Assembly (NCBI GenBank): GCA_950097015.1
Contig: CATNEN010000033.1
Location: 1,302,001 to 1,366,000 of the forward strand
Direction of reading: 5' to 3'
DNA: 64,000 bases
From: Macrostomum hystrix
Taxonomy: Eukaryota > Animalia > Platyhelminthes
Under the pieces are notes generated by a model. That model was not told where the DNA came from. It was given only the letters and a program-made list of their open reading frames with translations, and did no database searches. Shown piece after piece: positions 34,401 through 63,447 of the stretch; the first letter of the stretch is position 1; the number at the start of each line of letters is the position of its first letter. Position numbers and translations under genes: made by a program.

Positions 34401-37400
34401 AATGAGGATGAGAGTAAGAATGATATAGAGAATGAGAATGAGGATAATATAGAGAATGAGGATGAGGATGATATAGAGAATGAGAATGAGGATGAGAGTA
34501 AGAATGAGAATGATAATAATAAAAATAACTAAAAAATAATTGGAATAAGAATAAGCCTGAGAATGTGAACGATAAGCGCTCTCAAAACCAGCCTTCTTCT
34601 TCTTGTCCGGGTTCTTACACCTCAAACTTGGCCAGCAAATGATTGAGATGAGTGAACTCAATCGCGCTGAAGGGGCCTAAGAGAGACGACTCGCTGGCCT
34701 GTCTGATTAGAGGAGTAACTCGGGATTTCTCGGGATAACCCGCCTGAATAGGAAGGAAATGCAGGGGCCATTTGAACTAGCGCCAGCCATCGCCCTGCCT
34801 CCATCACTGGGTATGGCTGGAAGTTGATTGTACTGCGCGATACTGGGACTATTTTTTAGCAAAAAAATCCCTTTATCATTAGTTTGTGCGTTTTTTCCAA
34901 TGCCGGAGCACTCCATTGCGGGAGCTGCAGTGGATCGCAAAAGGGCTTAATTAACCGCAGAAAATTGTTCTTTTCATAATGAAGTCTTGGCGCAGTGGCC
35001 ACAGAGGTATCTGAGGGATGAAGGATCTGAGGGATGGGGGATCTGAGGGATGAAGGATCTGAGGGATGGGGGATCTGAGGGATGAAGGATCTGAGGGATG
35101 GGGGATCTGAGGGATGGGGAATCTGAGAGATAAGAGATTGGGGATTTGAGAGATGGGGATCTGAGAGATGGGGATCTTAGAGATGGGGATCTGAGGGATG
35201 GGGGATCTGAGGGATGGGGGATCTGTGGGATGGGGGATCTGAAGGATGGGGAATCTGAGAAATAAGAGATTGGGATTTGAGAGATGGGGATCTGAGAGAT
35301 GGGGATCTGGGAGATGGGGATCCGAGAGATGGGGATCTGAGAGATGGGGAATTTGAGAGATGGGGACCTGAGAGATGGGGAATTTGAGAGATGGGGAATT
35401 TGAGAGATGGGGATCTGAGAGATGGGGATCTGGGAGATGGGGATCCGAGAGATGGGGATCTGAGAGATGGGGAATTTGAGAGATGGGGACCTGAGAGATG
35501 GGGAATTTGAGAGATGGGGACCTGAGAGATGGGGACCTGAGAGATGAGGATCTGAGAGATGGGGATCTGAGAGGTGGGATCTGAGAGATGGGGGATCTGA
35601 GAGATGGGGGATCTGAGAGATGGGGGATCTGAGAGATGGGGGATCTGAGAGATGGGGGATCTGAGAGATGGGGGATCTGAGAGATGGGGATCTGAGAGAT
35701 CAGGAATCTAGAATTTTTTTACTTAAAGTACCTGTAGCGATGGCTCAGATCGAAAAATTCCGAATAACTTTCAAAAGAAAGCCTTTCACAAAGAAGCTTC
35801 TCAGTACAGCTGTCCCTGAGGGCCTGAGGTGTTGCTAAACGCAGCCTTAAAATGAGTTCGTTTGTGATCAGCTGGAAGCATTCCCTTGAAGCAGACCCGG
35901 CTCGAAAATGGCTTTTAGAGCGCGCGGGACAGAAGGGGGCTGAATGAGGCCGGAATCTCATTATCAGCGCGGATAGTGGGCCGGGGCAGGGACCGTAGCA
36001 CGGACCGTATCGCTTTGCGTCATGAGCCGCTGGTAGGGGTTAGGGTCCCTGTACGAAATTCATTAGCTTTCGCCCTTAGGCGGCACCAGAGAGGGCGGAC
36101 AGACTGGGCAGAGACGTGAGGAAGGCTCTGAGCCCCAGTTTTCCAATCCGTTGAGCTTCTGTCCGGCAGAGAGTGAAACGAATCGGAAGTGGATGGCCGT
36201 CCTGAGCTACCAGTCAATGTTCTGCTCTCTTTATCTCCGAGTGCTACTAAGAGGGTAACTGATACCTGGCTTTGAGCAACGCAGGCCTTCAATTACTGAA
36301 TCGATATCGAGTTATCACTGAGCAGAAGCTTCTGAAGGATCGGATCTGGAGGATTGTGACTGGGGGTGTGATCTAGAGGAACTGGGGGTGTGATCTAGAG
36401 GAACTGGGGGTGTGATCTAGAGGAACTGGGGGTGTGATCTAGAGGAACTGGGTGTGTGATCTAGAGGAACTGGGGGTGTGATCTTGAGAATTGTGACTGG
36501 GGTGTGATCTAGAGGATGGTAGCTGGGGTGTGATCTAGAGGATGGTAGCTGGGGTGTGATCTTGAGGATGGTAGCTGGGGTGTGATCTTGAGGATGGTAG
36601 CTGGAGTGTGATCTTGAGGATGGTAGCTGGGGTGTGATCTTGAGGATGGTAGCTGGGGTGTGATCTTGAGGATGGTAGCTGGGGTGTGATCTTGAGGATG
36701 GTAGCTGGGGTGTGATCTTGAGGATGGTAGCTGGGGTGTGATCTAGAGGATGGTAGCTGGGGTGTGATCTTGAGGATGGTAGCTGGAGTGTGATCTAGAG
36801 GATGGTAGCTGGGGTGTGATCTTGAGGATGGTAGCTGGGGTGTGATCTAGAGGATGGTAGCTGGGGGTGTGATCTAGAGGATGGTAGCTGGGGTGTGATC
36901 TAGAGGATGGTAGCTGGGGGTGTGATCTAGAGGATGGTAGCTGGGGTGTGATCTTGAGGATGGTTGCTGGGGGTGTGATCTAGAGGATGGTAGCTGGGGG
37001 TGTGATCTAGAGGATGGTAGCTGGGGTGTGATCTTGAGGATGGTAGCTGGAGTGTGATCTAGAGGATGGTAGCTGGGGTGTGATCTTGAGGATGGTAGCT
37101 GGGGTGTGATCTTGAGGATGGTAGCTGGGGTGTGATCTAGAGGATGGTAGCTGGGGTGTGATCTTGAGGATGGTAGCTGGAGTGTGATCTAGAGGATGGT
37201 AGCTGGGGTGTGATCTTGAGGATGGTAGCTGGGGTGTGATCTAGAGGATGGTAGCTGGGGGTGTGATCTAGAGGATGGTAGCTGGGGGTGTGATCTAGAG
37301 GATGGTAGCTGGGGTGTGATCTAGAGGATGGTAGCTGGGGGTGTGATCTAGAGGATGGTAGCTGGGGTGTGATCTTGAGGATGGTTGCTGGGGGTGTGAT

Positions 37401-40400
37401 CTAGAGGATGGTAGCTCGGGTGTGATCTAGAGGATGGACTCTGGAGGGTTGGATATGTAGAATAGATCTTGTTTCGAATAGACTAAAGAAATTAGGATTA
37501 TTTAGATAGTTTTCTTCGGAATGGGATTTTTAGATTGAGATTAAAAAATCTATTTTTATACAAGCTAGTGCGTTTGTTCTAAAAAGGATTCTTTAGAATG
37601 GGATTCTTTGGAATGGGATTCTTTGGAATGGGATTCTTTGGAATGGGATTCTTTGGAATGGGATTCTTTGGAATGGGATTCTTTGGAATGGGATTCTTTG
37701 GAATGGGATTCTTTGGAATGGGATTCTTTGGAATGGGATTCTTTGGAATGGGATTCTTTGGAATGGGATTCTTTGGAATGGGATTCTTTAGAATGGGATT
37801 CTTTGGAATGGGATTCTTTGGAATGGGATTCTTTGGAATGGGATTCTTTGGAATGGGATTCTTTGGAATGGGATTCTTTGGAATGGGATTCTTTGGAATG
37901 GGATTCTTTGAAATGGGATTCTTTGGAATGGGATTCTTTGGAATGGGATTCTTCAGAATGGGATTCTTTGGAATGGGATTCTTTAGAATGGGATTCTTTA
38001 GAATGGGATTCTTTGGAATGGGATTCTTTAGAATGGGATTCTTTGGAATGAGATTCTTTAGAATGGGATTCTTTAGAATGGGATTCTATGGGATGGGATT
38101 CTTTAGAATGGGATTCTTTGGAATGGGATTCTTTAGAATGGGATTCTTTAGAGTGGGATTCTTTAGAATGGGATTCTTTAGAATAGGATTCTTTGGAATG
38201 GGATTCTTTAGAGTGGGATTCTTTGGAATGGGATTCTTTGGAATGGGATTCTTTAGAGTGGGATTCTTTGGAATGGGATTTTTTAGAATGGGATTCTTTA
38301 GAATGGGATTCTTTAGAATGGGATTCTTTAGAATGGGATTCTTTGGAATGGGATTCTTTGGAATGGGATTCTTTAGAATGGGATTCTTTAGAGTGGGATT
38401 ATTTGGAATGGGATTCTTTGGAATGGGATTCTTTAGAATGGGATTCTTTAGAATTGGATTCCTTGGAATGGGATTCTTTGGAATGGGATTCTTTAGAATG
38501 GGATTCTATAGAATGGGATTCTTTAGAGTGGGATTCTTTAGAATGGGATTCTTTGGAATGGGATTCTTTAGAATGGGATTCTTTAGAATGGGATTCTTTA
38601 GAATGGGATTCTTTAGAATGGGATTCTTTAGAATGGGATTCTTTAGAACGGGATTCTTTAGAATTGGATTCTTTAGAATGGGATTCTTTAGAATGGGATT
38701 CTTTGGAATGGGATTCTTTAGAATGGGATTCTTTGGAATGGGATTCTGTGGAATGGGATTCTTTGGAATAGGATTCTTTGGAATGGGATTCTTTAGAATG
38801 GAATTCTTTAGAGTGGGATTCTTTAGAATGGGATTCTTTGGAATGGGATTCTTTAGAATGGGATTCTTTAGAATGGACGAATCATTGCATTAATTCAAGG
38901 ATCGCAGATTTCTCCACCAATCACGTCGGTTCAATCGCAGTACGTGATGGGCAATGGGGGTTGAGAAGGAAAGCAGGCAGAAATATGACCAGATGAAAAG
39001 TCAGCCAGTCTTGATTCACAGCTGTGCTGTCCCGTTGCTGAGCCCACAGAGCCTCCAAGATGGTCAAACTAATTCGAAGCCGATGTTCCAACTTTCTCCA
39101 TATTTTCTTCTCGTGGAGTTCGCATCTTCTACTGCGCTGAAAGAAGTCTGCTGGTCTTTTATTTCAGTCACGCAAGCCCCGTCACGACTCACTCGCCTGA
39201 GAAAGACTTATTCTTTTATGAGCGTTTGTTATTCCCGCAAGTCTAGCCTTTCAAATTCACTCAGAAACTGCGGGTGTTCGGACAGAATAAGCTGGGATAA
39301 AAATGTCCTGCTAAGCCAGCTCGACTGTGATTTGATCCCCCTTTTTGGCACAACTGTTGACAGAGAAATCTTCGGAAAAGTAAGGAGACACTCGTTTAGT
39401 ATCGATTTTATCAAAGTGAGCAGGAAGTGATGTTGAAACTGCTCAGAAGCGCTCAGATTTTGTGACAGAGCTCGCAAAGAGATACACAGCTTAATCCATT
39501 TGAAATATAAGCCTAGACCTTTAAGACACTGCCAATTTCCTGTTCTGTAACTGATCAGAGTGGCATGATCTTCTGAAAGATGACTCTGGATTAAATGCCG
39601 ATTAAGCGAAGAATTTCCCTTGTAGATTAGATTTCATGGGAAGTGTTTCGATCAAGTCTGCGTGGGCGACTGGCAGTAGTTTTGGGAGAGGTGTCTGCTA
39701 GCAGTGTTGCGTTGGTTGTCCTTTTTGCGCTGTCCATAGCAAACACGGCACTAAGTATAACAGGGCAGTAAGCCGCTAAGTGTTGTTGACCAGTTCAGGT
39801 TTTAAGTCTGAGCTCAGGCCTCGAGCAAAGTGCTCGTGTTGAGTCTGGCGTTCAAGAAGCTGCGGGGAATGGCGCAAAGCCAGAGAAGCAGGAGCAGCCG
39901 TCCGGGTCGTTACATTTTGCGATTCCTAGAAAATAAATGAGGTCTGCTGGCGATTCCCGCGGGAGCCGGACAGACCTCGACTCGGGCAGCTGGCAGAGCC
40001 TGCCCGACCTACTGCGCCACGCGGTCTAGAGCAAAGAGCAGAAGCCACAGAAAGCGGCAAGTGAGGACGGGAACTTGGAAATCAGTTAAGGCGTGTGAGT
40101 GAGGGAATCGAATCACTGCTGCACGGCGACCCGGCAGCCTGCACTTCACTCAATAAATTTAGAGCCCCTTTAAATGGCATTTTAAAAGGAGAAATTCTTT
40201 TAAGATAAAATTTTCGAAGTTGAATTCAGCATTTCGGCCTCGGTTTTTTAGTTACCAGTTTGGATAAGCTCTTGGTTGCCAATCACCCCCTCACCTTTCC
40301 ATCATCAACGCGCATGGCGTCAACGACTCGCCAGAGCTGCTCCTGGCCAGCGCTGCCGGTCTGGCGCTTGAGCTGGAAGCTCCGGCAGATCGGGTTGCTG

Positions 40401-44485: not shown

Positions 44486-45982
44486 CTCCTATTTTTTGCT
44501 GTTGAATTTACACTGGGCGACTATGCGACTATGGACACATGGATTTGTGCATCTCTTTAGGAACCGGATCGCTTGATGCGGATGTTGAAAAGTACCAGTA
44601 CATCTCATTGCGAAGTTAAAGGTGAGCTTCTGTATACATTTTCAAAATCCTGCAATACCGATTGCATTGTCTTCCTGTCAGTAAATTTTATTATTTCTGG
44701 TCAAGAAAAATCGTTCATACGAGCACGTGGTATTTAAAGAATTAGTAGAATAATTCTTGCCCAAACGAGACATTATCATTGATAGATAATTTTTAACTGT
44801 TAATAAATTGAATGGCATCTGGCTTCTTTCAGCTCAGATGGCAGGCTATAGTGATGCCTTAGCATGTGCAATAATATGTTATCGCTATCAATAACTGTAT
44901 TCAACACAAACAATTTGTCAACTGCAAACCCGTCTAATGAGGGAAAAATTTCAGATACCAGGGAAAGGTGTCATTTAAAATTAATGGTGAGAACTTGCTT
45001 AATTGTACTTGTACGGCGTGGCCTACTTATGAATATCGCATTTTGCGGTGTAGTTGGAACAGCTGGCTTTTAAATTGGACACTGAGCTTTCTGCGGTGCC
45101 AAGAAGCGACTGCTGTCTATGGCCAACTCGAAAATACACCTGCGGGCTTTTGAAATTTGAAGCAGGCAGACATTTAGACACAAAGGGGTAGGTTGTCATC
45201 AGCCTACGCATGTTAAAACGAGGTTGAAACTAACGGCAGCCCGCCCTCTGCTGTTGTATATGGTCGAATTCGATAGATATGCACAGCGGGCGGGCCGTGA
45301 AATGCGTCGACGTTTCACCCCATTTCAGCCCTCTGCTGCCTATCAATATTTGTATAATATGCTGATCCCATGCTGATGTTATCCTGATGTATGTCACTGC
45401 AACTCATTGATTCGTTAGGGAAAAAAATTAAAACAGTTTTACTGGCAACCGAGCAGAACGAGCATGTAAAATTTTGCGCAGCTGTTGCAAGGTGACCAAC
45501 GGATTCTCTTCCGTTGCAGAACGGAAGAGAACGGATTCTCTTCAGCTAGCAGAAAGTCTTTCATCGTTTCGGTGGGCTTTCGGTTCTTACTCCACCCCTG
45601 GGCAGTGCTTAGCGTCTCCCTTCCAAATCAAAAGCGTGGTAGATGTTGTACACGGAGAAATATTGCCTAGCGTTCGAGAAATATTGCGCCATGCAGACAC
45701 TGCCAACGGGGCGGACTTTGTTCGCACGCTGTCTCTGCGGCGCGCCATCTGACGCTGCCTCCCTGACTTTTGGGGCCTGCGTCCTTTGTTGTTCTTGTTG
45801 TTGTTGAGAAATATCGCCCACTGGCTCACCTCTTTGCCAAGCTTGGAAAACGATGTCTCTTTTTTTCTCGCGTTATTTTCGCGTAGGTCTGTTATTATCC
45901 ACTTCCATGTCTCGATAACAGAAAATGGTGACACTTTTGGGCAGAGAAATTTACAAGCCTGTTTGAGTTTATTTGATTTAAC

Positions 45983-48900
45983 CATGGATGAATAATATAA
46001 CTGGATCGCCAGAAGCTCGATTTTTTTGGTCCTAGCCATAGACAAGCACCAGCATCACAAGAAGCTCAGAATGCCGTACTTTCACACATAGACAAATTGC
46101 CGCTGCAGAAACCTTTATTTATGAAATATTCCATTTTATGTCCAAGCACATGCTCGCAATATATGCAGGGCGGCAAAAGATGGCTTCGCGAGATGAATAA
46201 GGACGTCAGAATTTGTGCTGCAATCGGATGCCTATCCAAAAGTGGACAAGGCACGAAACCTGTCACCCTTTTTTCTTATCCAATCGGTGATCCGTATCGA
46301 CTAGCGCAGTGGAACAGCAATGTGCAAGCAAAGCCACATTTCAAATTCGGAGCTCGTAAGTTCCTTTGTGAGCTGCACTTCGAGCAGCGAGACATGCAGG
46401 CTCATGGGAGGAGCAAGCGACTGATGACTGGCGCAGTTCCGAAGCTTGAGTGGACTAAGCTTGAACCGCAAGAGCTCACTGACTTCCACGATCCAAACTC
46501 TTATGCAAACGAAGCTACTGGAGACTGTGAGTTTGAGATGCCGATGCCTGTCAGTTGCAGCGCGGCAACCACACGCACATCAGTCGACCCACCACCAAAC
46601 ACCCGACAGCGCCTGTTGATGCGGCTGAAGCACAAGAAGCGCACGATTAAGACTTTTGGTCCACGCGTTGCAAAATGGAAAAGTACCGAAGCGACCTTAA
46701 AACATGTAAAGCAAATGTTGACTTCTGAAGGTCTCAAGCTGTTTTCTTTACAACCACGAAATACCGCAGGTGGTTTCAATAACCACGTCAAAGACTTCGC
46801 CGAGAGGATCAACTTCTGCTCTCCAAAAGCATATCGAGAGTTGAGAAAATTCATGCACCTCCCTTCGCCGTCAACCTTGCGGTCTTGGATTGGAGCAGTG
46901 GATGGCAGGCCTGGCATTTCCATTGCTGGAGTCAAGAAGGTTGGAGCCCTATCGAAACAGATCTTCGATGGCGTCGCTTGCAACGACTGGACTCTAGTCA
47001 TTGATGGCATGCATCTTCGAAAGGAGTTGTGTTGGGAAGCTAGCGAAGGAAGAGTGGTCGGCTATTGTGACTCAGGGATCCATGAAAATTTAGGTCACAA
47101 ACTTGCTTCTGAGGCAATCGTTGTCATGGCCTGCCATCTTCAGCGCCCGTGGAAAGTGCCAGTTGCCTACATTTTGGCCGCTGCAACATCCCCGGTTCAA
47201 CAAGTGGAGCTTTTGACGCGTACTATTAGCGCAATGAACGATGAGGGCGTCGTTGTACGCGCGCTCGTGTCGGACGGTTGCTCTGCGAACCTTGCGACGT
47301 ACAGGAAACTTGGAGCTGAGCTGCCGTCTAGTCCTTATTTCCAAATCGGTTCGCAACCAGATCGCATATTCGCATTCATTGACAACAGTCATTTGATAAA
47401 GTTGGTGCGCAATTCGCTGGCCGATTTGGGAGTATTCGTTGTTCACGATCGCATCATCAACTGGCACTATCTGGAACTATTGCACAATCTGCAAGAAGCT
47501 GAGGGGGTTCGAATCGGAAATCGGCTGACAAAGAAATGCATTGAATTGTGGCAGCGACACAAGATGAAGGTCTGCTTGGCTGCACAGACAATCAGTTCGT
47601 CCGTCGCTGACGCTCTCACATTCCTAAAGGAGCTTGGAGTTTCGGATTTCCAAAATTGTGATGAAACGGTCCGCTTTATTGCATTGATGGACCATCTGTT
47701 CGACATCTTCAACTCGAGGTGAGCCGGTATATTTAACCAAAATAGCATAAAGACGCGCAATCATGGCCTTTAAATTTGCATCCGTTTTTTGCAGGACTCC
47801 GTCGGCGTCAGGCTGGAAAGGTCCCATTTGGAAGTCGCAAGCAAGCCTTTCGACCACATTCGCGTTTCTCGATGAGGCGCGCGACTACATTCGCAGCCTC
47901 TACACGATTAATGGCGTACCGCTGATTGAGAGTCGGCGAAAAACATGGGCTGTAGGATATTGCAACAATATCACAGCCCTGAAGCTGTTACTTCAGGACA
48001 TTTTCTATCAGCCGTCTGCTTGCTTTAAGTACCTCCTGACGTACCGTTTATGCCAAGACCCGCTGGAACACTTCTTTGGTGAGATTCGTCAGAGAGGTGG
48101 TTTTAATAACAATCCGAACGTTCAGCAGTTCAGGTACGCTTATCGGGCGATTTTGGCGCACAGGACTGGATCTGTCGGGCACTGGTCCCTCTCGACACAG
48201 ATTTCACCTCCGCCTGGACTCTCCACCTCTGCTTCTGCCAGTGTACAAGATGAAATCGAGGATCCACCGCAATTAGCACTCAGCCTCATTAGCCAGAATG
48301 TCGGCTGCTACATCGCTGGATTCATTGGCAGATGGCTTACAAACAGACTGTCTTGCGAAAACTGCAAGGCATCTCTTCATTGCGAGATGCACACCAACCT
48401 GCTTACTACTCTCAAAGATCGCGGTCGTCTTTTTCGACCATCAGCATCACTTTGCCGACTGGCGAACATTTGCGAGTCGGCTGTGAAAGGAGTCAGAACT
48501 GACGAACTGTCTCTAGACATACTCGATCGTCTACTTCCAATCTGCATCCAACAGGGTATCGAGTTGTCACTCTTCGCTCACGTTTGCAGCAATAGAGCAC
48601 CCGAAGAAAACCATCAATATTTTCTAGTGCAGGCGATTTCTAAGAAATATCTTTGCATTCGGTTGCGGCATGTACTTCGGAGGCTTAACGCTGTGAACAC
48701 AACAACTGTGCGTCAGATGCTAACAAAAAAAATTATTTTCATGGGTCAGTGACTTCAAATTAGCATTGTGCGGGTGACGCCTTGAATTTATTGTCTTTAC
48801 TTGACTCTCCTTTGTCTTGCGCGGTTTGCTTGCAACTCATTTGGCTGTTTGTTTTCGCCTTTTATTGTTTGTTTGTTTGCTGTCTGTCTACGTGCTTGTT

Positions 48901-49160
48901 TGCTTACTTGCCTGCTTTCGTGTCTGTTTTGTATTAATTCCCTTACATATTCGTTTTCTTCTTTGCTTGCCTTCACATTTGCAATAGTTTCACTTATCCT
49001 ACTAAGTATACTTATAAATAAAGGTTTGCAGCTTCTGCAGCGGCAATTTGTCTATGTGTGAAAGTACGGCATTCTGAGCTTCTTGTGATGCTGGTGCTTG
49101 TCTATGGCTAGGACCAAAAAAATCGAGCTTCTGGCGATCCAGTTATATTATTCATCCATG
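45983..49160 (+). mobile_element. Apparently intact P-superfamily (THAP9-like) DNA transposon, 3178 bp
   Basis: 128-bp perfect TIRs starting CATGGATGAATAATATAAC (45983-46110 / 49033-49160); 8-bp TSD GATTTAAC at 45975-45982 and 49161-49168; uninterrupted spliced transposase. Confidence 0.95.
46193..48752 (+). CDS. P-element/THAP9-type transposase, ~827 aa, 2 exons (46193-47718, 47795-48752)
   Basis: THAP C2CH (CAAIGC...FSYP...W...LCELHF...AVP), LVIDGMHLRK, LVSDG, DNSHLIKLVRN and QDPLEHFFGEIRQRGGFNNNP motifs. A 76-nt GTGAGC...TTTTGCAG intron joins FNSR|TPSASGWKGP in frame. The start codon is uncertain (upstream ATG at 46163). Confidence 0.93.
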
Positions 49161-49516
49161 GATTTAACCATGGACAATTATCATTAACTTTTGCGGGCAT
49201 AGCGATGATTTTTCAGGGCGTCAATGAGAACACTTTTGCCTTGAATATATCTATGGTATTTTTTATTTTAAATAGCAAATAACGATGAAACATAGAAACA
49301 TACGAATTCAAACAGCGGTCCAGCAGTTTTTTTCTCACACGCATGAAATAAACAACCAGTTAGTAAAAGTTTGTCTTATTCGCAGTTCATTATCGAAACT
49401 ATCAGACTGCAAGTAAACTAGTCCTTCAGGCCGTGGATCTCGAACTTACAATTTTGAAATGTTCCGGAAAAATTCACACTGATCGATGGACCTTGCGAAG
49501 GCGACTCAGCTTGTCC

Positions 49517-50838
49517 TTAGGCATGATGAACATTGCAGTTAGACATTGTTTCCTTTATCGACATCACACCAATAGGGCCCACACGTTTAACGCGCACGGT
49601 CGATACACTGGCGTCGACGGACAATGCTTCTGACATTGCTCGAAAGTCGGCGTCTCTCCTCATCCTGGAGTAACGTTCCACACTCTCTGGGTTTTTGTGT
49701 CCCGTGTTACTAGCAATCACTGAATTCGAAAATCCGTGCTCTTTCAAAATCGTAACGTGGGTTACGCGAATACAATGATTCGTGTAACACTTGAGACCAT
49801 GATTATTCGAAAGTTGACTCATGAGTTGATCGATCGTATTTTTGCCAACCGTACGGGATACACAGTACCAGCGCTTATCTTATGTACCTTTTGAAACGTT
49901 GACACACGGCTTCGGGAAAAGCGACTCGATGCGCAGGTCGTTTAGGCACTGCAGGTAGATCTTTAATGCAGCATCGGGACAATTTTGATTTTCAGAATCC
50001 GAATACATGCGTGCCTGCTTAGCATCATGGAATTCGGTCTTCTTCAGAGATGCCTTCGAATTCTTACTTAGAAGGTCATGATTCAGTGCGACATAGTCAC
50101 GGCCTTCAGAATCTTCTAAAAACACGCAACTCTCCTTAGTCAGCGTTGGTAGAGTTTCTCGTCCACGCAGTCCAAAATAATAAATTAGATGAAACATGAT
50201 GAATTTAGATGAAATTAGACCTCCTGCTGCAGTATGACACCATTTGACCTATCAAAATAGCCCATGATTTTCTGCAGGTCATTATTTTCAATTGCAGCAA
50301 ATCTGTCTCGGGATTTTGGCTGATTGGCTAGCTTGTACATCGATACCAACATCCGATTGGCATTCGCGAAAGCAATGTCCGCAATAATATTAATATCCGG
50401 ACGGTTCAGACAGAAGAAGCGATGCAGTCCGGCTCGAACGCAGATAAGACTTGCTGGAGCATAGTACTGCTCGTCCTTTGTTCGCAATCTCGAATAGAAG
50501 AAGCGTAAATAGTTAGCCAAAATAGACCTTGGAATTTGTAACAGGTCAGTTGACAGCTTGCTTGCTACCAAAAATCTCTTGAAGCGGTTCAAATTTTCCT
50601 CCATCTGCCGTGCAGAAGAATCGGGCAGGTGATCTCGCTCAAGCTGATTCAACTCCTGCATCACGTCCTCCGGAACGTCTTGAATCTCCTCAGACTCCAT
50701 CTTGCGCGCGAATTCCTCGCTTAGTTCTTCCAAATACCGACTGTTCGATTCTGATGATATCCAAGGTAACTCTTCGGTTGACATACCGGAGACAATTTCT
50801 CCAGGCATATTGGAAAAATTAATTAAATGTTTGATCAT
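49517..50838 (-). pseudogene. Tyrosine recombinase (Crypton/DUF3504-type), disrupted
   Basis: Catalytic R (YFGLRGRE), H-x-x-R (YTNHCIR), H (TGHK) and Y (SVERY); N-terminal LANYLRFFYSRLRTKDEQYYAPASL and C-terminal WY..VGKNTI motifs. Broken by a 20-nt insertion with a stop (50198-50217) and an in-frame TAA at 49880-49882. Confidence 0.88.
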
Positions 50839-51462
50839 GGTTAGACCGTCAAAAAAAGAGCTAAATCCTGGCAGAGTTAAAATTACAGCGCTTCTCTGGA
50901 AGCCGGGGCAAGTTAAATTTTTTTTAAAGAAATATTTGTCTATGGTACAGAGTGGGGGGGCTTTGCCCACTTCTTGTGTGGGCTTCGCCCCCCACACCCC
51001 CAGATTTCACCCACGCTTCTTCTTTTAGTTGTCTATGGTAAATAATAAGCTATAATACAACATGGAACCCGGAATTTTCGACATGTCTGTTGCCTAAAGC
51101 AGGCATCAATGTACTCGTAGAATTTTGAGGGCGCGTAAGCGCCCGAACTAAATTCTACATTGATGCCTTGCAAAAAGCAATGTTTATATTATATTGTTTA
51201 GATGCCTTAATGTCTGCCCGCTGTCTGATTTCGTATTCTCGAGTTGGCCATAGACAGCAGTCACTGCTTGGCGCAGCAGAAAGCTCAGTGTCCAATTACG
51301 TACTTTACGTGCTAAAAAAGCCAGCTGTCCCAATTAGACCGCAAAATTTTGTAATAGTGCATGCTATAATTTACTGTTTCGTAGCAACGATTTGCCCTTA
51401 GGGGATCTTATTATCGGCGCAATGTCTTTGTCTCTTAGCAACATATTGAAGTCGCTTATTGT

Positions 51463-52885
51463 TCAGCGACCCGCTTCACTATTACAAGCCAGCTCCGCCT
51501 GGGACATGACGCGACAGATGTGAACCTTCAGAGACTGAAGGTGGTTCAGCAGCTCGGCAGAAGCTGGGTCCTGCTGGCTCGCCCTCAGCTGGGAGATTCG
51601 GTGGTTCAGGTGGTCCAAGGGCGTCTTCCTGCACCGGTCCTTGGCCAGAAGGCCAATCAGATCCGAGTGAGGCTTTTGATTGGCCACGCAACTGATAAGA
51701 TGGTAGACCATTTGGATGGATTGAATGCTATCCAAGCACTTGGTGAAAGCGTAGTGAAAATGGTTTGTTCGTTCCGCTGCACCGCAGCAAAGCTGAGTGG
51801 GCGCAGCGTCGAAATCCAAAAAAATTGAAATCAGGTCAACTCGGCGCATCTTCAGGCTCAGCGACAGAGGTGTCTGGGGTTACGGAAAAATGTTTTTTTA
51901 TATTAGAAGGTTGTACGAGCTCGTATTTCCATAAGATTCGTGAACTTCTGAATTCATGGTACTTTCGTGTGGATTAGAATTCCGCAATTGAGTCATGGGA
52001 CCATTTAGATAACACAGCTTTGATAGGCTTACATGGCCGTTAATGTTGACCAAGTTAATGACCGGCAGCAACTTCTTTTGCCTTCTCAGTTCGCTTAGAA
52101 GGTAGTCTACATCTTCCTGACTACGACCTTGCATCACCGCATTGTGGAGCTGTCTGGAGTTTAAAATATAAAGTAAAAAATACTTTACGAACAGAAGAAG
52201 GACAAAAATACAAACAGTAGTATTGGAGATTCAATAGTGTTGGACATGTCTACTTTTCACAACACGCTTTTTAAGCGTTTCGTGTAAAGTGGTTTAGTCC
52301 CACGCCACCACACTACCTGCTGCTTCCGCCGTTGTTTGCGTCTTTGTGGGGCTGTTGGTTACTAAAACTAATCTTGTGTACTTTATGAGTGCTCCAGGCT
52401 CTGCGATTGAAATCAGAAGATATAGATTTTGCTAGCAAATGACGGCTAGCAAATGGGTAACCACTAATATGCTAATAATCCACTAGTAAGCGAACCACTA
52501 ATAAGCAAAATTGGAGACTGCTCAATGTGCACATTGCTTGCGGGTAACTAATCGACATCAACTGTATTGGGTGCCTCACGTGTTGAAGTTATCGTCAACT
52601 AGCAGTGCCTGTGGATTAATCTTCTTCAGCAGGGCTAAGCGTGTTGTAGAGGATAGGCCTGGCCCCTTGTCAGATGTCGGGAAGGTTGTATGTGCCGGCT
52701 GTGTGGGTACTGGCGGGTGCGGCGGCAATGGAGGGGCAAGCTGGGGCTCATTGATAACGACATTCGCTGTGCTTCCCGGGATTCGGCAAGCGGCATCGTC
52801 ACAATTGGCACCATGAGCGGATCCATTTAGCAGTTCTAGTAGACTGTCAAGGCATTCGGCTGACTGGTCCAAAGCCTGCGGCGGC

Positions 52886-54780: not shown

Positions 54781-57700
54781 TTAACTCTTGAGTCCACTTG
54801 CGCTAACAGGCACCAAGCCTTCAGGCAGGGACCACAGCTGGATGAAGCCTTCTTGAGTTGCTGCTACAATCGTTGTGTCCTGGAACGCGAATGCCATGTC
54901 TGTTGGCAGCGACGCAAAAGGCACAGCTTCGACGGTGGTCAGTGGAGTCTATGAAACAGGTCAAGGGGTTCATGAAGAAAAATAGTATTATTATTACTAT
55001 AGCAATATCATACGTAATTTTCTGTGAGTGAACGAGTAGCCCGTTTGACTTCTGGCACCAAGTTTCCTCTGCTCGAATCCGCAGTTAGGCCCCATTAATT
55101 TGGAGTGCAGCCCCGAAGAGAAGACTCAGGGCTTTCTGCGATTTACCACCAAGGGTCAACCCCGAGGGCACAGTGAGAGTGTACACTGCCTGACGATGAG
55201 GAACTCAGGGCAGATGTATACACCTTGAGTGAGTGTGATTCCGTGTACGTATACTCTGGCTATGGGTCGACTTTCGCGTCGACAATGAAGCTCCAGTGGT
55301 CACTGCAAATATCACAATGAGTACGGAGTTTTCTATATCACGCCAGAATTGATTCACCCACAAGCTAATTAAAATTCGTCCAACAAACCTCCCCAGGCAG
55401 AAACGGGTAGGCGCGGACTTCCAGCTTGCCGTCTCCAGAGCACGAGGCCAGCAGTCGAGAGCTTGACGAAAGAGTCGACAAACATTGAGCATCTCGGCGC
55501 GCTTCAACGCCTCGAATCAAAGATTCGCTGTCAAAGCACCGTTCGTCAATTTTGGCGTCGGGAGACGTTGGCCGCATCGTTGGAGCTGACCCTGAATGTT
55601 GATAAGAGTGCGAGTTTGACATCATTTTTAATTTTTAGAATGTACAGTAAAGACTAGACAAACAAGCTATGACATAAGTGTAACGGAAAGTGTATTTTAA
55701 ATAAGCTTTGTCAGCTAGTACAGGATCATGCATAAACTTAGATTTTCTACATGAACCTTCAATGTCCCAGAGCAGACCGTACTGATTTGACCGTACTTGA
55801 GCAGAAAGCAGACAGTTTGTTGTCAGTTGCCATGATGTCGAGCCAGCTAAAAAAGTTAATCTACAGAAAAATTGTCCCTTTTACTGCAACGGCATTCGAG
55901 TCATCGCGTCACAGAGAGTTCCACCCGACTCTCACACAGCTTCACCAGCAGCTCCTCGCACTGGCTCCTCAGCAGGTGGCCGCTAGGCGACCAGTCCAAC
56001 CTGCGAACAGGAGACGAGTGGCCAAGTACAACAAGCGACGCTGCCGAGCCGGGAAAGGCGGCCGGACAGATGTCTGGGGAGTCCAGAGTAGAGCCCGTGC
56101 GCAACAGGCGCAAACTGCCGTCCCGGCATCCGATGGCTAGGATTGCACCGTCTGTAAGGTTGGTTCGGGTGTTATGTGCCCTGATCAACAACGATGCTGA
56201 ATTTCATGCGAATTACCTGGACTGAAGGAAACTGCGGTCACTCCGATGTCTGAAATAAAATTTAAAGCGTTTTTTAATTTAAGTTGCGAAACGGCCAAAA
56301 CGAGTTAGATAGCTCAAGAGAGTAGCTTGGAACGCCAAAAGCAGGCGTCACCTTAGCTCTCAGTTAAACTCTCTCACGCACTCTTCCGATCGCTGGTTGC
56401 GCAGGAAGCGAGCAGCTCGCCGTTCTCGCTATCAAGCACCACAATCCGCCCGTCCGCTGCGCCAGCTACTATGTGGCGACCGTCCGGCGGACGCCAGGAT
56501 ACACAGTTCAGCGGCACTGCGCCGCCTGCCGCAGCTGCTTCTGCGGACGTCGCTTGCGACCGCCAAAGTCGACGTCGTCTCGACCAGCCGCAGACGTATC
56601 CATCAGCGCCGACTGTGACGAATCCGACTCGTCCGCGACGCGACCCAGCAGGACGCGTTGCTATGGCGACCCTGCCGATACCAGGGTGAACGCAACCGGC
56701 GAGATGGCAGAAGCTGCCAGCCAGCGAGCCTTCGAGGAGCTCACCGGAAGCGGTGATAAGCGCCAACCGACCATCAGAGCCCAGGGTAGCAACTGACACC
56801 AGCGGAGATGTCGGAGACAACGAATGCAGCTAAGGTTTTTTCAGTTGGGATGAGACATTGTATTCTTGGTTTTGTCTAAGTTTGGCAGATCTTTGAATCG
56901 TAATCAGCACAATAGTCTCTCTCACAATAGTCTCCTTCACTAATTCGTAGTCGTTGAAGGTGTCCCAGACTCGAATGCAGTTGCCGGACGCAGAGAGTAG
57001 GGTTCCATCTGGTAGAGCCTGTAAGCAGCTCACTGGACCCTTTAGTATAGTTAATGTACACAGTGATGCATTTTCAGTACCGTTCAAGGCTCACTAACCA
57101 TACAACAATAAAACCAGCTCCTAAAATTTAGCGACCGAATCGAAAAATTGTTGTCTACCTTTGATATACGAGCTAGATAGAAACCATTCGGTTAAGTCCA
57201 TCACTCCATCCACCCGTCACCCACCTTGCAAAACTCACCGGATGAGGTTGACCATCGAGATTTTTCGATGACCACGGTCGAAAAGAGTCATCGTCATGCC
57301 GAGTCCACACTCGTAGACGTCCGTCAGAGCCGCCTGCTACGGCATTGCCCGCTAGATCAAAGACGAGGCACAGCAGCCTCGGTTGAGATGTCGAGGGTGA
57401 TGCAGTCGATGATCCAGAAGGCGAAAGGCCGCCGGCACTGCGCGTGTCCAGCAGCAGCGCCTCCCCACCGAAGAGACGCCAAAAGTGCGCATGTCCTCGG
57501 CCTACTGATACCACGCCAGTGAAAGCCTCTTTTACGTCGAGGATTTCACTCTCGCTAAAGCCATCGCCATCGTTCAGGTTATCCACATTGATGCTTGGCC
57601 GAAAGATCGCGCGTCGGACTCCACGACCGTCGGTCTTTGTTCGGGCAAGCGTGTGGCCTGCCGACCAGTCATATATCACCAAGGACTGTCGTGAGTTGGC

Positions 57701-60700
57701 TTCACTATCACATTCATTGTCACAGTTTTCACCTTCGCCTTCAACAGCAAGCAGAAGTTCGCCATCGACCGAGAAGTTAAGCGAAACTGCGGTGATAACT
57801 GGACCAGCTTCACCGAGTACAATCAGGGTGGCAAGGCTGACGACGTCCCAGATCCGGATACTGCTATTGAAACCGTCGCTGTGGTCTTGGCCGTTGACAC
57901 TGCCGGAACTCCGCGATTGGACACGCTGACTACTGGCCACTATTGGGCGACTTGGGTGGCAATCGAGGCTGTGTTTTCGTAGCAATAGATTTGATGCATC
58001 ATACGGGTCAAGCGTCTCATATGAGCCGTAAATGACCCACCACGGCGGCTATCAGAAGTCATCGGGATGCTTAGAAACTGTTCTATTTTTATCTTTATTT
58101 CTAAGCCTATGTTCACAAGTAGTAGAGTGACGTATGTACGAATTTTGAACCTCAAGCCCAGGGAGACACAATCCGCGATCTGTCTGTGTCCTTCAGCAAA
58201 GTAGTTCCCTAGTGCCTCAGTTCAGCAGCTGTTAAATCAACTGAATCTACCCAGAATCAACTGGGTAGAATTCCCCCAGTCCTTGGACTGAACAGCTGTA
58301 CATATGGCCTTTGGAAGCGCTGCGTAATTACTGCCACTGTGCCACTGGCTGTTCATCTGGCACACCTGTGCTTGTGTGAATTTCGACTCCATTTTTTGCA
58401 AGTATGCAACATTATAGTATAGTCCTATAGTGCAATAGCATGGCCTATAGCAGTATGACATTGAGCAAATACCCGGGAAGCCAACATATTCAGAAAAACA
58501 CGAACCAGACAATATGCAACTGGTGCCCGGTGTAGTGCCTCTGCCTCCGTCTGTCTGGGCTGAGCAGTACAGCCACCGCGGCTGCGGCAAACACTAAAGA
58601 ACCGTCAGGCAGGGCTTGCAGGCAGCCTGACGCAGCATTGACAGGACCGTGGAGCCAATAGAAACTCAGGCTGCCGCTCTTACTGACTGGGCGAAAGTCT
58701 CACGATGGCGAGGGAAACGGTTGTCATGTCATGTGCGAGTTAATGTCTATGGCTTCCTGAGCTAGCTAGACTCCGAGGAGAGGACCAGAACGCCATGCAA
58801 GCATTTTATTATGGTTCCAACCGTTTTTCGCTTCGAGTAACCTTTTTAGCCCGTACCTCGTTGATAGTAGCCCCTTAAGGCTCATTAAAGCTCACGCTGC
58901 CAAAAAACGAGGCTAAAAGACACTATGATTATTTATCGCTGTTATGACCATTCATACCTGTGTCGCCGATCAAAGCTTTTTTAAGACGAAAGAGAAAATT
59001 TTTTTAAATAAATCGCTTATTTAAAATATATAAATTTTTAAATTGAAATCAAATCGCTATCCCTTCGGGGGTGTCGCTCGCTTTCATCTCGCCCAATTTT
59101 TCCGTCTTCCCGGTGTTTAACGAGCCTTACTAACTATTTAGTTTCATCACTCGGGGGTGAGTGACAGAGCAGTCAAACGTATTTGCCTCTCGCGCCAAGG
59201 TCCCTGAGCTCGATTCCGCGGAGAGAAGGCTTTGGGGCTTTATGCCCATGAGGGCCAACCTCCAAGGCCCAGTGAGAGTGCAGTGCACTACCTGACGATG
59301 AGAAAGTCAGGGCAGATGTACACACCTATGTGAGCATGTGCCTGCATATAGTATCTGTGCGTTTGTGCTCAGGAGATAGAGAAATAGGTGGTATTGCCTC
59401 CTCGCTGGCTTCTGGTCCAGTGTCACCAAAATGATGTGTCATTGCCCGCAGCCCTCCTACAATTCTTATATTATAACACTATTATTAGGTTCGTGACTAA
59501 CCCTATTCCTATATTTAGCATGCTTTTCCAGTGTTAGTTTGACTCACCTCGATACTGGCTCTCGTCAGTGAGTTCTCCTGTCGACCTGCTCAGCACCGAC
59601 AGCGGTGGCTGCAGTGGCTCAAAGGAGCGGCCACTTCTTGTAGCCGAGAACTCAACTCTCAGCCGCTCTGTGGGGCTCTCACTCTGAGACCGTCGGTGAC
59701 TGCTGGACGTTTCTGAGTAGGAAATTGTTATTCTGTGTAGTTAATGCCGTTAGCACTACTGTGAGCAGTGTGAGTCTAAAGCTGTTATTATGATTGTAGA
59801 TACGGCTAGAAAATTACATATTATAGTAATCATAATCATTCTGACCAAGAGATCCAGAGTTCGATTCTCAGCCCAAGGGAGAGAATGTGTGTCATCGAGA
59901 ATGAGATTTCATTCCCTTATGCTTCAGTTCAGCCAGCATTAGCCATGAACTGTGTTCATTCCCTTATGCTTCAGTTCAGCCAGCATTAGCCATGAACTGT
60001 GTTCATTCCCTTATGCTTCAGTTCACCCAGCTGTAGCCATGAACTGTGTTCATTCCCTTATGCTTCAGTTCAGCCAGCATTAGCCATGAACTGTGTTCAT
60101 TCCCTTATGCTTCAGTTCAGCCAGCATTAGCCATGAACTGTGTTCATTCCCTTATGCTTCAGTTCAGCCAGCATTAGCCATGAACTGTGTTCATTCCCTT
60201 ATGCTTCAGTTCAGCCAGCATTAGCCATGAACTGTGTTCATTCCCTTATGCTTCAGTTCACCCGGCATTAGCCATGAACTGTGTTCATTCCCTTATGCTT
60301 CAGTTCAGCCAGCATTAGCCATGAACTGTGTTCATTCCCTTATGCTTCAGTTCAGCCAGCATTAGCCATGAACTGTGTTCATTCCCTTATGCTTCAGTTC
60401 AGCCAGCATTAGCCATGAACTGTGTTCATTCCCTTATGCTTCAGTTCAGCCAGCATTAGCCATGAACTGTGTTCATTCCCTTATGCTTCAGTTCAGCCAG
60501 CATTAGCCATGAACTGTGTTCATTCCCTTATGCTTCAGTTCAGCCAGCATTAGCCATGAACTGTGTTCATTCCCTTATGCTTCAGTTCAGCCAGCATTAG
60601 CCATGAACTGTGTTCATTCCCTTATGCTTCAGTTCAGCCAGCATTAGCCATGAACTGTGTTCATTCCCTTATGCTTCAGTTCAGCCAGCATTAGCCATGA

Positions 60701-63447
60701 ACTGTGTTCATTCCCTTATGCTTCAGTTCAGCCAGCATTAGCCATGAACTGTGTTCATTCCCTTATGCTTCAGTTCACCCGGCATTAGCCATGAACTGTG
60801 TTCATTCCCTTATGCTTCAGTTCAGCCAGCATTAGCCATGAACTGTGTTCATTCCCTTATGCTTCAGTTCAGCCAGCATTAGCCATGAACTGTGTTCATT
60901 ACCTTATGCTTCAGTTCAGCCAGCATTAGCCATGAACTGTGTTCATTACCTTATGCTTCAGTTCAGCCAGCATTAGCCATGAACTGTGTTCATTCCCTTA
61001 TGCTTCAGTTCAGCCAGCATTAGCCATGAACTGTGTTCATTCCCTTATGCTTCAGTTCACCCAGCATTAGCCATGAACTGTGTTCATTCCCTTATGCTTC
61101 AGTTCAGCCAGCATTAGCCATGAACTGTGTTCATTCCCTTATGCTTCAGTTCAGCCAGCATTAGCCATGAACTGTGTTCATTCCCTTATGCTTCAGTTCA
61201 GCCAGCATTAGCCATGAACTGTGTTCATTCCCTTATGCTTCAGTTCAGCCAGCATTAGCCATGAACTGTGTTCATTCCCTTATGCTTCAGTTCAGCCAGC
61301 ATTAGCCATGAACTGTGTTCATTCCCTTATGCTTCAGTTCAGCCAGCATTAGCCATGAACTGTGTTCATTCCCTTATGCTTCAGTTCAGCCAGCTTTAGC
61401 CATGAACTGTGTTCATTCCCTTATGCTTCAGTTCAGCCAGCATTAGCCATGAACTGTGTTCATTCCCTTATGCTTCAGTTCAGCCAGCTTTAGCCATGAA
61501 CTGTGTTGTATACAGCTTCTGGATGTGCTGTGCCATTAGCGTTTTGCGTTTTGTGTTTACATCGAGTTGGGCTAGTGTGCAAGCGTCTATCTATCTGTAA
61601 TAAAACTTGATTAGATAAGCAGCAGCAAGCCAGACGCGCAGTTAAAAATTTTATTTCTACGAAATTAGGATTAGTTTGGCACTGTAAAATTGTGAGTGAA
61701 TCAAATCCAAAATAAGTTTTTAAAACAGCTTTCTTTGCTAAAAAGTGGCTTTTTATATTGGCAGCCGAAACAAGAATTTCACGCATTTTAGTACATCTGC
61801 AATTAAAAATCTGCAGGGGAGCCAGGTGGGAATTTCATGACGGATTTGGTGGAAAAATACTCTACAGTCCATTGTCACTTGTTGATTATTCAGCCTGAAA
61901 TTGACGAAACAAGTGTGCCTTTCTTAGAACTGTTAATATTATTTGGCCTCGATGTAAGCATTGTTCGATTTTATTTACCGAAATACCATTCGACCAATAG
62001 ACATACGACTCACATCTCGATCAGACGACCCACATCCTATTCAACTCATATCCCGTTCGACCCATAATTCAATCCACATCCCACTACCTTCATCTAAATG
62101 CCATTAAACTGAGCCTTCTTAATCCCAGTCGAATGGCATCCGTTCCACTTGAAAGCTTGTTAGTAAGAAATACCCCTATAAGCTATGCTCTACAAACACA
62201 GCTCTACGTACATACTCTGAATCAATGACTCAGACACCCACCTGACTGGTGCCAGCCGTTCTCGGGCTGGCGATCGAGTCGCACCGCCGGCGACCTGCTA
62301 TCCTGCGAGACGTCGCCGCTTCGACTGCCACCGCTGCCAGCTAGCTCCACCGGAGTCAGTTCTCGGCCGCAGGCAATGAAGGTGTCGTGGTCCTTAAACT
62401 CGCGAAAGAGCTGGGAGAAGCTTTCCACCTGCATAGCGACGAGTTCAGGTGTTATAATTAGCACTTTAAGGACGAATTTTCGACTAGGCGAACCGATTAT
62501 GAATCCTCAAGCCAAGACAAGTCGATCGACTCACCCGCCTGTATGGAGGCAGCGCGGTGTACAAAGCCCGCACCGGGGGCCCGGACATGATCAACAGGCT
62601 GGCGAAGTCAGCCAGTAGGTCCTCGAACATCAGCCTCGTGCCTGGATTCACCAGCACTTTCTCGCGCGAGCCGCGATGCGTATTGCTCACGACGGTGATC
62701 AGACGGATTCCGCGAGGCGGCACCGACTGCGAGGAACTTGTCGACGATTTGTCGGCGCCGTTTCGACGATGGTAGTGCCGACTGTCCCGCCTGGCCAGCA
62801 GGCGAATGTCTGCTTGGCGCATCCGGCCGGCCACAGAGCTGGGGTCACGTGCTTCCGTCAACCATGGCTTCTCGCTGACGTCGACAGCGGTGCCGTCGCC
62901 GCTGCCATAGTCGAGTCCGCGGACGAGACGTCGGACGCCGGAAACAGCGTACCGGCCACCCGGCTGCAGATCAGCGACGTCTCGCACCGGACGACCGTCT
63001 GGCAGGCGCAGGATGTGGCGGACTCCGGAAGTTGTCGGGATCTTCTCGCCCAACCAGACGAGCAGTGACTCCATGGAGACGAAGGCCTTCTGGCTGATGG
63101 ACGCGTTGAGGCCCTTGAAGTACGGATCGCCATTGCGGTAGAATGTGACAAGACGGCCGCGTCTCGAGCCGACATGGATGCCGGTGGCCTGGGCGGAGAT
63201 GTCTGCGCGAGTAGACGGGAGGTGCGGCAAGAATCGAGTCGGTGCGACACCATCAGGAAATGTGGGCTTGAGTTTATGAACTTTGAAGATTGGATTCGAC
63301 CTCTTAGATTGAAAGCCTCTTGAAGTCTCTGACCTCTGCACGAAACAACTCACCTGGTAGTCTCAATCGCTGCTCATGAGTCAGCGGCTCTGGAAAGTAA
63401 TTCTCAGAGTCCGAGTCCCGATAATCCCAGTAGCCATTTGCTGCCAT
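54781..63447 (-). CDS. DCX-EMAP: Doublecortin-domain EMAP-like protein (2x DCX + HELP + WD40/TAPE), 12 exons, 1068 aa
   Basis: In-phase exons 63354-63447, 62535-63202, 62242-62428, 59548-59712, 58506-58686, 57239-57968, 56926-57039, 56382-56829, 56217-56249, 55936-56151, 55389-55591, 54781-54948 (3207 nt). DCX motifs VTFYRNGDPYFKG and DTFIACGRE; HELP-like YWLHG...QRHYTGH...CLDCHP; EML-type IRIWD, GHSSPVRRLDWS and VRAYP. The symbol follows the Drosophila architecture. Two donors (GTTCGT, GTTTGT) are weak. Confidence 0.87.
55115..55228 (+). mobile_element. Fragment of SINE family A
   Basis: GGGCACAGTGAGAGTGTACACTGCCTGACGATGAGGAACTCAGGGCAGATGTATACAC body segment. Confidence 0.75.
58155..58325 (+). 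mobile_element. Fragment of SINE family B (CORE-like)
   Basis: TGTGTCCTTCAGCAAAG...GTGCCTCAGTTCAGCAGCTGTTAAAT...CCCCCAGTCCTTGGACTGAACAGCTGTAC matches the 7435 copy. Confidence 0.78.
59155..59485 (+). mobile_element. tRNA-derived SINE, family A
   Basis: GGGGGTGAGTGACAGAGCAG head, CCAAGGTCCCTGAGCTCGATTCC, shared body and 3' end, TAT tail. Confidence 0.85.
59908..61505. repeat. 47-bp minisatellite (TTCATTCCCTTATGCTTCAGTTCAGCCAGCATTAGCCATGAACTGTG), 34 copies, embedded in a SINE-B remnant
   Basis: Direct periodicity (1598/47 = 34); B-box head upstream (GAGTTCGATTC ~59858) and SINE-like continuation downstream. Confidence 0.97.

Follow-up and report, generated by a model that had tools for sequence, protein, structure and literature searches.

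A dead Crypton with a conserved junction palindrome, probably nested among other mobile elements, in the flatworm Macrostomum hystrix

Introduction

Does a tyrosine recombinase gene that lies between long inverted repeats, with a GC-rich hairpin near either end, belong to one transposon of unusual architecture, or is it surrounded by the repeats of another element? The question is raised by positions 45040-51347 of a 64,000-nucleotide stretch of Macrostomum hystrix DNA (contig CATNEN010000033.1, positions 1,302,001 to 1,366,000; hereafter the window, to which all positions refer), for which a distinct recombinase-bearing unit of ~3.1 kb had been proposed. Our analysis identifies the recombinase copy as a dead Crypton, that is, a DNA transposon encoding a DUF3504/QRICH1-type recombinase alone, and the right-hand hairpin as a bona fide member of a palindrome conserved at the junction of related elements, the latter independently of the nesting question. 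The interval as a whole is probably a nest of mobile elements rather than one element, with a canonical Crypton of ~2 kb inside a separate, non-coding, repeat-bounded element and a P element added later.

Of all orders of eukaryotic DNA transposons, Cryptons are understood least. Because those of animals have been described without terminal structure, their ends are hard to annotate and their mechanism is hard to test.

Results

The recombinase gene occupies 49418-50838 on the minus strand, starts with the ATG at 50838 and would encode ~466 aa if intact. Its three open reading frame (ORF) pieces, searched separately, are collinear end to end with intact homologues of 450 to 480 aa, at 54 to 57% identity. 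The frame is interrupted by a 20-nt frameshifting insertion (50198-50217, minus strand), on either side of which ORF pieces 1 and 2 abut on consecutive homologue residues, and by two in-frame TAA stops on the same strand, one at 49880-49882 and a second, seen by comparison with the consensus of the relatives, at 49517-49519. Since the conserved C-terminal motif FSGTFQNCKF comes after the second stop with the frame unchanged, the coding sequence was taken to end at 49418. The full catalytic set that the original prediction had claimed is there, with R (within GLRGRE), K, HxxR, H and Y all kept, albeit in a broken reading frame. The pieces match QRICH1 (E = 1.2e-4) and Phage_integrase (E = 1.3e-5), both under Pfam's own cut-offs; among aligned relatives, DUF3504 and Phage_integrase were found in 20 of 20 and QRICH1 in 11 of 20. 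On the strength of these relatives, together with the weak matches of the pieces themselves, we assign the gene to the Crypton-type recombinases.

The remaining content of the interval agrees with this assignment. An R-H-R-Y recombinase is present, and outside the nested P element there is no reverse transcriptase (RT) or other transposition enzyme. As had been predicted, an ORF and Pfam scan of the interval revealed no RT, capsid or polymerase, the P element being the only further coding sequence. A search of 45040-51347 for an RT domain gave none, and the gene set of DIRS-like elements (RT/RNase H, methyltransferase) was not found. Pfam returned DUF3504, Phage_integrase and QRICH1, not the DUF3435 of Starship/Enterprise elements, and cargo was absent. 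Two further ORFs (45474-45752 and 45587-46045) are without a Pfam domain, and a scan of the interval against Rfam gave no known RNA family.

When the full-length relatives P0005 and P0007 served as queries, word searches yielded ~90 protein clusters, and one metagenome scan yielded 80 loci. An initial word search with a 260-aa piece had returned one cluster; a length window of 143 to 455 aa hides the full-length relatives of 456 to 480 aa. Nearly all relatives lie on metagenomic or Logan contigs of 1.2 to 4 kb with 33 to 38% GC, some of them from Tara Oceans or other marine samples, and the closest among the ~90 clusters has at most 57% identity to the window gene. They are multi-copy, with flanking DNA that differs between samples. 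Metagenomic contigs of ~2 kb showed neither circularity nor terminal repeats at their ends. One of the contigs starts with 29 nt that resemble a sequencing adapter (L001, 1-29).

Could the gene be the remnant of a virus-like element, for instance the integrase of a Polinton-like virus, or a host gene that was domesticated and is now decaying? Domesticated genes of animals, too, can encode DUF3504 domains (PMC3212892). However, domesticated DUF3504 proteins lack a complete catalytic tetrad (PMC3212892), whereas the catalytic residues are kept here, no capsid or polymerase gene lies nearby, a scan of a viral contig collection gave no relative, and the relatives are repeated in differing surroundings with defined ends. 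Both origins are therefore hardly credible.

The ends of related elements were defined by identical proteins on contigs of different samples with diverging flanks. Three families could be mapped in this way, represented by P0016 (L085, 136-2028), P0062 (L089, 420-2354) and P0084 (L093, 90-1912), with lengths of 1892, 1935 and 1823 bp, respectively, counted from CAAT. All three have the same order, 5'-CAAT, hairpin, recombinase gene and (A/G)ACAAT-3', within 1.8 to 1.9 kb, and all have short terminal direct repeats (CAAT to CAAT); terminal inverted repeats (TIRs) longer than 17 nt were not found in any of them. The hairpin begins 14 to 19 nt from the mapped 5' end. Furthermore, the 3' end of the relatives repeats in inverted orientation, over its final 15 to 25 nt, what directly follows the right arm of the hairpin. 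When the two ends are joined through one CAAT, the left arm is thereby lengthened and a palindrome of ~145 to 165 bp results. In the rebuilt junctions of the three families, 66 of 79, 66 of 79 and 58 of 69 arm positions matched.

Such junctions also occur naturally. In contig L098 (1-230), two slightly different copies are joined through one CAAT, and because the repeated ends differ at two positions, this is a tandem pair and not an artefact of a circle. In L086 (1941-2020), in the 3' flanks of L094 to L096 and in L015 (430-2293), the 3' CAAT abuts the left arm of another related hairpin. Related Cryptons thus lie in tandem or mosaic arrays, also in L008 (67-2254), with a neighboring unit that is sometimes of a different family, as expected if circles integrate beside resident hairpins.

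In many close relatives, the region 150 to 350 nt upstream of the recombinase start codon contains a long imperfect palindrome, with the apex GCGC-GTNA-GCGC and two copies of a TTTTG-N-GGGC-like motif in each arm. To search for it, we used a covariance model (R1) derived from an 11-sequence alignment of the relatives' hairpins, from which the window was left out. R1 found a single match in the 64-kb window, at 51091-51179 (43.2 bits, E = 6.5e-8); this is the right-hand hairpin, with the apex GGGCGC-GTAA-GCGCCC, and its annotation as the family palindrome (minus strand) is borne out by its fold (ΔG = −24.5 kcal/mol, z = −6.9, better than all 200 shuffles) and by alignment with the relatives. 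The model matched ~16 distinct close families from marine metagenomes, including P0062 (59.9 bits), which was not in the training set; at distant recombinase loci it gave no match at any.

In the 11-sequence alignment, pairing is kept in 91.4% of the cells, compared to 71% after shuffling and 39 to 46% when the partners were slid; both sides have changed in 22 of 29 pairs, and none of 500 shuffles equaled any observed measure, with the caveat that the structure was derived from the very sequences used for this test. The hairpin DNA is 83 to 89% identical among L083, L084 and L085, compared to 69 to 70% for the coding sequence. Among the arm columns that vary little or not at all are A, A, T and A, T, T, which belong to an inner CAAT and to its mirror ATTG. 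The palindrome at 51091-51179 is probably the binding and recombination site of the recombinase.

Alternatively, the conserved hairpin might be a promoter or transcription element, or a replication origin. Its position upstream of the start codon in the relatives would suit such a role, and covariation alone, when seen in a DNA palindrome, is compatible with a duplex dyad that binds protein as well as with a folded strand. Nevertheless, we regard a regulatory or origin function in place of recombination as improbable: the hairpin follows the mapped 5' end of the element almost directly, its left arm is completed across the junction by the element's own 3' end, CAAT and ATTG are among its most constant columns, and insertions of relatives abut resident hairpins at CAAT.

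Three further observations concern the hairpin and its surroundings. First, the apex loop (51130-51145) reads GTAA on the plus strand, whereas in nearly all relatives GTNA or GCNA is found on the strand of the gene; the loop of the window copy is thus flipped with respect to the recombinase gene. R1 scored 43 bits on the plus strand of the window hairpin compared to 26 on the minus strand. A recombinase-mediated inversion between inverted CAAT and ATTG sites is a possible source of the flip. Second, in L083 (165-290), only the right hairpin arm is kept and the left arm is replaced by GC-rich DNA with a called 90-aa gene, which may reflect a chimeric contig or a rearrangement. Third, a small GC-rich palindromic insert of 78 bp (50948-51025), flanked by 15-nt direct repeats (50933-50947 and 51026-51040), lies between the hairpin and the start codon of the window copy; it may be a very small insertion of the kind of a miniature inverted-repeat transposable element (MITE).

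With the mapped families at hand, the 5' end of the window copy could be located. When the window was aligned locally with the P0016 family at its mapped 5' terminus, the canonical terminal crossover tetranucleotide, CAAT, fell at 51193-51196 on the minus strand: the minus strand read from 51196 scored 53, compared to a null distribution with a mean of 16.6, a standard deviation of 4.0 and a maximum of 41 in 2000 trials. In both the window and P0016, CAAT and the apex are ~57 nt apart. Because homology to the canonical 5' end starts at this CAAT, 6 nt inside the right-hand outer repeat, the outer repeats lie outside the canonical unit of the family.

A candidate for the opposite end, GATAAT at 49177-49182 (minus strand), was suggested by alignment of the 3' untranslated region, without statistical support. 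It lies 241 nt past the stop codon and would delimit a unit of 2020 bp, within the range of the family, with CAATTG as target. Other candidates for the 3' end are 45192, ~10 nt inside the left repeat, and the repeat tip at 45040. A position weight matrix (PWM) match at 49510 was rejected, as it falls inside the extended coding sequence, and an inverted hairpin arm at 49171-49230 was dropped (p ~0.05).

The inverted repeats that had been reported as imperfect and ~100 to 115 bp long are real and longer, with a left arm of 141 bp (45040-45180; outer tip ATTTTGCGG) and a right arm of 146 bp (51203-51347), whose inner edge and the canonical 5' CAAT are 6 nt apart. They consist of three collinear blocks, 45040-45071/51316-51347 (91% complementarity), 45073-45137/51233-51297 (92%) and 45161-45180/51203-51222 (85%), and the arms carry one indel each, of 17 nt and of 14 nt. 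The 64 kb held no further copy, and two probes of 19 to 22 nt matched only the two arms (chance expectation, 0.00 to 0.01). No target site duplication (TSD) was found around the outer repeats, the flanks differing directly outside them, and the pattern of a DDE transposon with TIRs or of a MITE was thus not seen; a 6-bp direct repeat, ATTTTG, overlaps the repeat tips at 45040-45045 and 51346-51351. The tips carry TTTTGCGG and an inner motif reads AGCGGGCA; both resemble the arm motif of the family. R1 with filters off over 44800-51600 found no second family hairpin and nothing in the repeats.

The left GC-rich hairpin (45233-45298) is a real fold, since 45225-45330 (ΔG = −22.8 kcal/mol, z = −3.3) was better than all 200 shuffles. 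Both members of the predicted pair of sub-terminal hairpins therefore fold better than every shuffle, but their proposed role as recombination signals finds support for the right one only, which is conserved and lies at the relatives' junction. R1 gave no significant match at the left one, the nearest being 45284-45331 with 10 bits (E = 0.96).

A 9-mer, TGTCTATGG, or its complement recurs at 45114-45122, 46036-46044, 49099-49107, 50938-50946, 51031-51039 and 51248-51256. These sites fall in the outer inverted repeats, in the terminal repeats of the P element and in the direct repeats around the GC-rich mini-insert; the recurrence may be due to chance or to a common target motif.

How, then, is the interval put together? 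In the nested reading that we favor, its core would be a decayed Crypton that runs from the 5' CAAT at 51196 through the palindrome to the broken gene (50838-49418) and on to a candidate 3' end near 49177, a size of ~2 kb being assumed by analogy with the relatives. The Crypton would sit 6 bp inside one arm of the inverted-repeat pair, and the repeats would be owned by a separate, non-coding element of ~1.1 kb that also contains the left hairpin. This outer element may itself have been mobilized by a recombinase, given its lack of a TSD, its 6-bp terminal direct repeat and its motifs like the family arm motif. As the last step, a young P element would have inserted 8 bp from the putative 3' end of the Crypton.

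Several points speak against this reconstruction. The 3' end of the window Crypton was sought by a PWM, by local alignments with shuffled nulls and by an nhmmer profile, and all results were non-significant. We infer the independence of the repeats from the Crypton from one copy of the repeats. Under simple nesting, a distance of only 6 nt between the canonical 5' end and the inner edge of a repeat is an odd coincidence. Finally, the TTTTGCGG tips, the inner AGCGGGCA and the Crypton-like 6-bp outer direct repeat would also fit a single, larger recombinase-mobilized unit.

It is therefore conceivable, although on balance rather unlikely, that the entire stretch 45040-51347, 3.1 kb long once the P element is subtracted, is a single lineage-specific Crypton variant whose true termini are the 141/146-bp repeats and whose tips, when joined in a circle, form a perfect palindrome, CCGCAAAA/TTTTGCGG, as recombination site. 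The likeness of the tips to the family arm motif and the nearly flush fit of the 5' CAAT with the repeat edge are in its favor, and ATTTTG at both outer junctions without a TSD is what conservative recombination predicts; the arms diverge by ~8 to 9%, a value that we judged, without computing it, to be roughly in keeping with the damage to the gene. On the other hand, the three mapped families measure 1.8 to 1.9 kb from CAAT to CAAT and are devoid of long TIRs, homology to the relatives starts at CAAT and not in the repeat, R1 detects nothing in the repeats, and the ~1-kb stretch 45181-45982, in which the left hairpin lies, is without a counterpart in ~25 relatives. The original prediction of a distinct 3.1-kb architecture thus survives as far as a recombinase-only element is concerned, not with regard to long TIRs as family termini. 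It had named different boundaries of other recombinase copies as evidence to the contrary, and such boundaries were indeed found; because they come only from relatives in other genomes and not from copies in this one, a lineage-specific, repeat-bounded variant of 3.1 kb may exist all the same.

The practical lesson is that in transposon-rich DNA nesting can put long inverted repeats around a recombinase gene, and that a second copy is needed before the whole is called one element.

The P element (45983-49160, plus strand) is bounded by the 8-bp TSD GATTTAAC at 45975-45982 and 49161-49168; the stretch that had been proposed for removal in silico (45983-49168) corresponds to this element plus one copy of the TSD. 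It has perfect TIRs of 129 bp, a terminus that begins with CATG and two ORF blocks, scanned separately, with THAP, HTH, TNP-like RNase H, GTP-binding-insertion and THAP9_C domains. An 8-bp TSD, TIRs, THAP and P-type transposase domains are thus all in place. Judged by its sequence, the element is intact-looking and probably a recent insertion, and it is possibly active. The P element of Drosophila melanogaster has TIRs of 31 bp; those found here are much longer, and they are not part of the Crypton.

Elsewhere in the window, a cluster of minisatellite arrays (27499-38876; periods of 31, 29, 24, 6, 15-16, 26 and 15) is the probable cause of the strong GC-skew block and of the long ORFs without domains in that region, and a RAG2_PHD Pfam match (27354-28376) that overlaps the 31-bp array is suspected to be a repeat artefact. 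Exon-like ORFs at 57173-63353 on the minus strand, with an EML beta-propeller plus WD40 and a doublecortin domain, suggest that a DCX-EMAP-like host gene adjoins the transposon cluster. A reverse transcriptase fragment lies at 2952-3947. By its contents, namely the P element, the doublecortin and EML exons and this fragment, the window was judged to be animal and insect-like DNA, and not human.

Discussion

The mapped ends, the covariation and the natural junctions of the relatives lead to a model of Crypton movement. The recombinase would recombine the two CAATs, the presumed points of strand exchange, and thereby release a circle; its binding sites would be the TTTTG-N-GGGC motifs, of which the rebuilt palindrome has two in each arm. 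The circle would then re-integrate at CAAT targets, often beside a resident hairpin. In an extended version, recombination would act on a structured site, with the palindrome of ~145 to 165 bp as a cruciform or folded single strand and CAAT in its stem, as in attC and the CTX-phage site, and the 3.1-kb unit of the window would be a mobile variant in which a second long palindrome, that of the joined inverted repeats, has been recruited as the attachment site; this combination appears doubtful to us.

If the family-level result holds, it provides exact ends from CAAT to CAAT, a covarying junction palindrome, a candidate binding motif and natural tandem junctions. This would amount to a concrete attachment site that is testable in vitro, and structure-based annotation of such elements and of their hairpin-only derivatives would become possible.

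The putative site invites comparison with known tyrosine recombinase systems. Like FLP/FRT of the yeast 2-micron plasmid, it pairs a eukaryotic tyrosine recombinase with a site made of several inverted and direct copies of a binding element, which are putative here; FRT, however, is 34 to 48 bp long with an 8-bp spacer, whereas the Crypton palindrome has two motif copies per arm and its crossover CAAT lies 47 to 57 nt from the apex. In bacteria, the integron attC site and the attachment site of CTX phage are folded single-strand substrates of tyrosine recombinases. They share with the Crypton site an imperfect palindrome of 60 to 140 nt, with conserved pairing and variable sequence, at the recombination junction; apart from their bacterial setting, they differ in that the palindrome described here is known as a sequence that could act either as a folded strand or as a duplex.

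DIRS1 has inverted terminal repeats and an internal complementary region, and a circle is the presumed substrate of the tyrosine recombinase both there and here. The elements described here are without RT, RNase H and methyltransferase, consist of DNA only and measure ~2 kb. Nevertheless, the right arm of the hairpin and its extension are complementary to the joined termini, much like the internal complementary region of DIRS elements (PMC13465315).

Among Cryptons, the active algal CryptonF-1_cRei of Chlamydomonas has the terminus CACCG and the target CAYCG, and the same paper records recombinase-associated inversions (PMC9977147). This agreement supports crossover at a short microhomology, and the CAAT termini and CAAT targets described here follow the same terminus-target logic. 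The ends and junctions of the relatives are thus in line with the Crypton model of recombination at a short sequence common to element and target, for which the algal element provides experimental support (PMC9977147). The algal element belongs to group F, the passages considered here mention no terminal palindrome, and its activity is experimental, whereas activity is deduced here (PMC9977147).

No terminal repeats at all were reported for animal Cryptons (CryptonA and CryptonI; Kojima & Jurka 2011; PMC3212892), and in a curation guide a terminal direct repeat of a few bp is the only distinguishing feature given for Cryptons (PMC8969392). The elements described here share with animal Cryptons a single DUF3504/QRICH1-type recombinase gene, no RT, no extra C-terminal domain and a length of ~2 kb, with short terminal direct repeats in the mapped relatives. 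The window copy differs in being bracketed by 141/146-bp inverted repeats. The subfamily as a whole differs in its 5'-terminal palindrome of ~80 to 125 bp and in the 15 to 25 nt of its 3' end that complete it, and this conserved terminal palindrome is a feature that we did not find described for animal Cryptons (PMC3212892, PMC8969392, PMC13465315).

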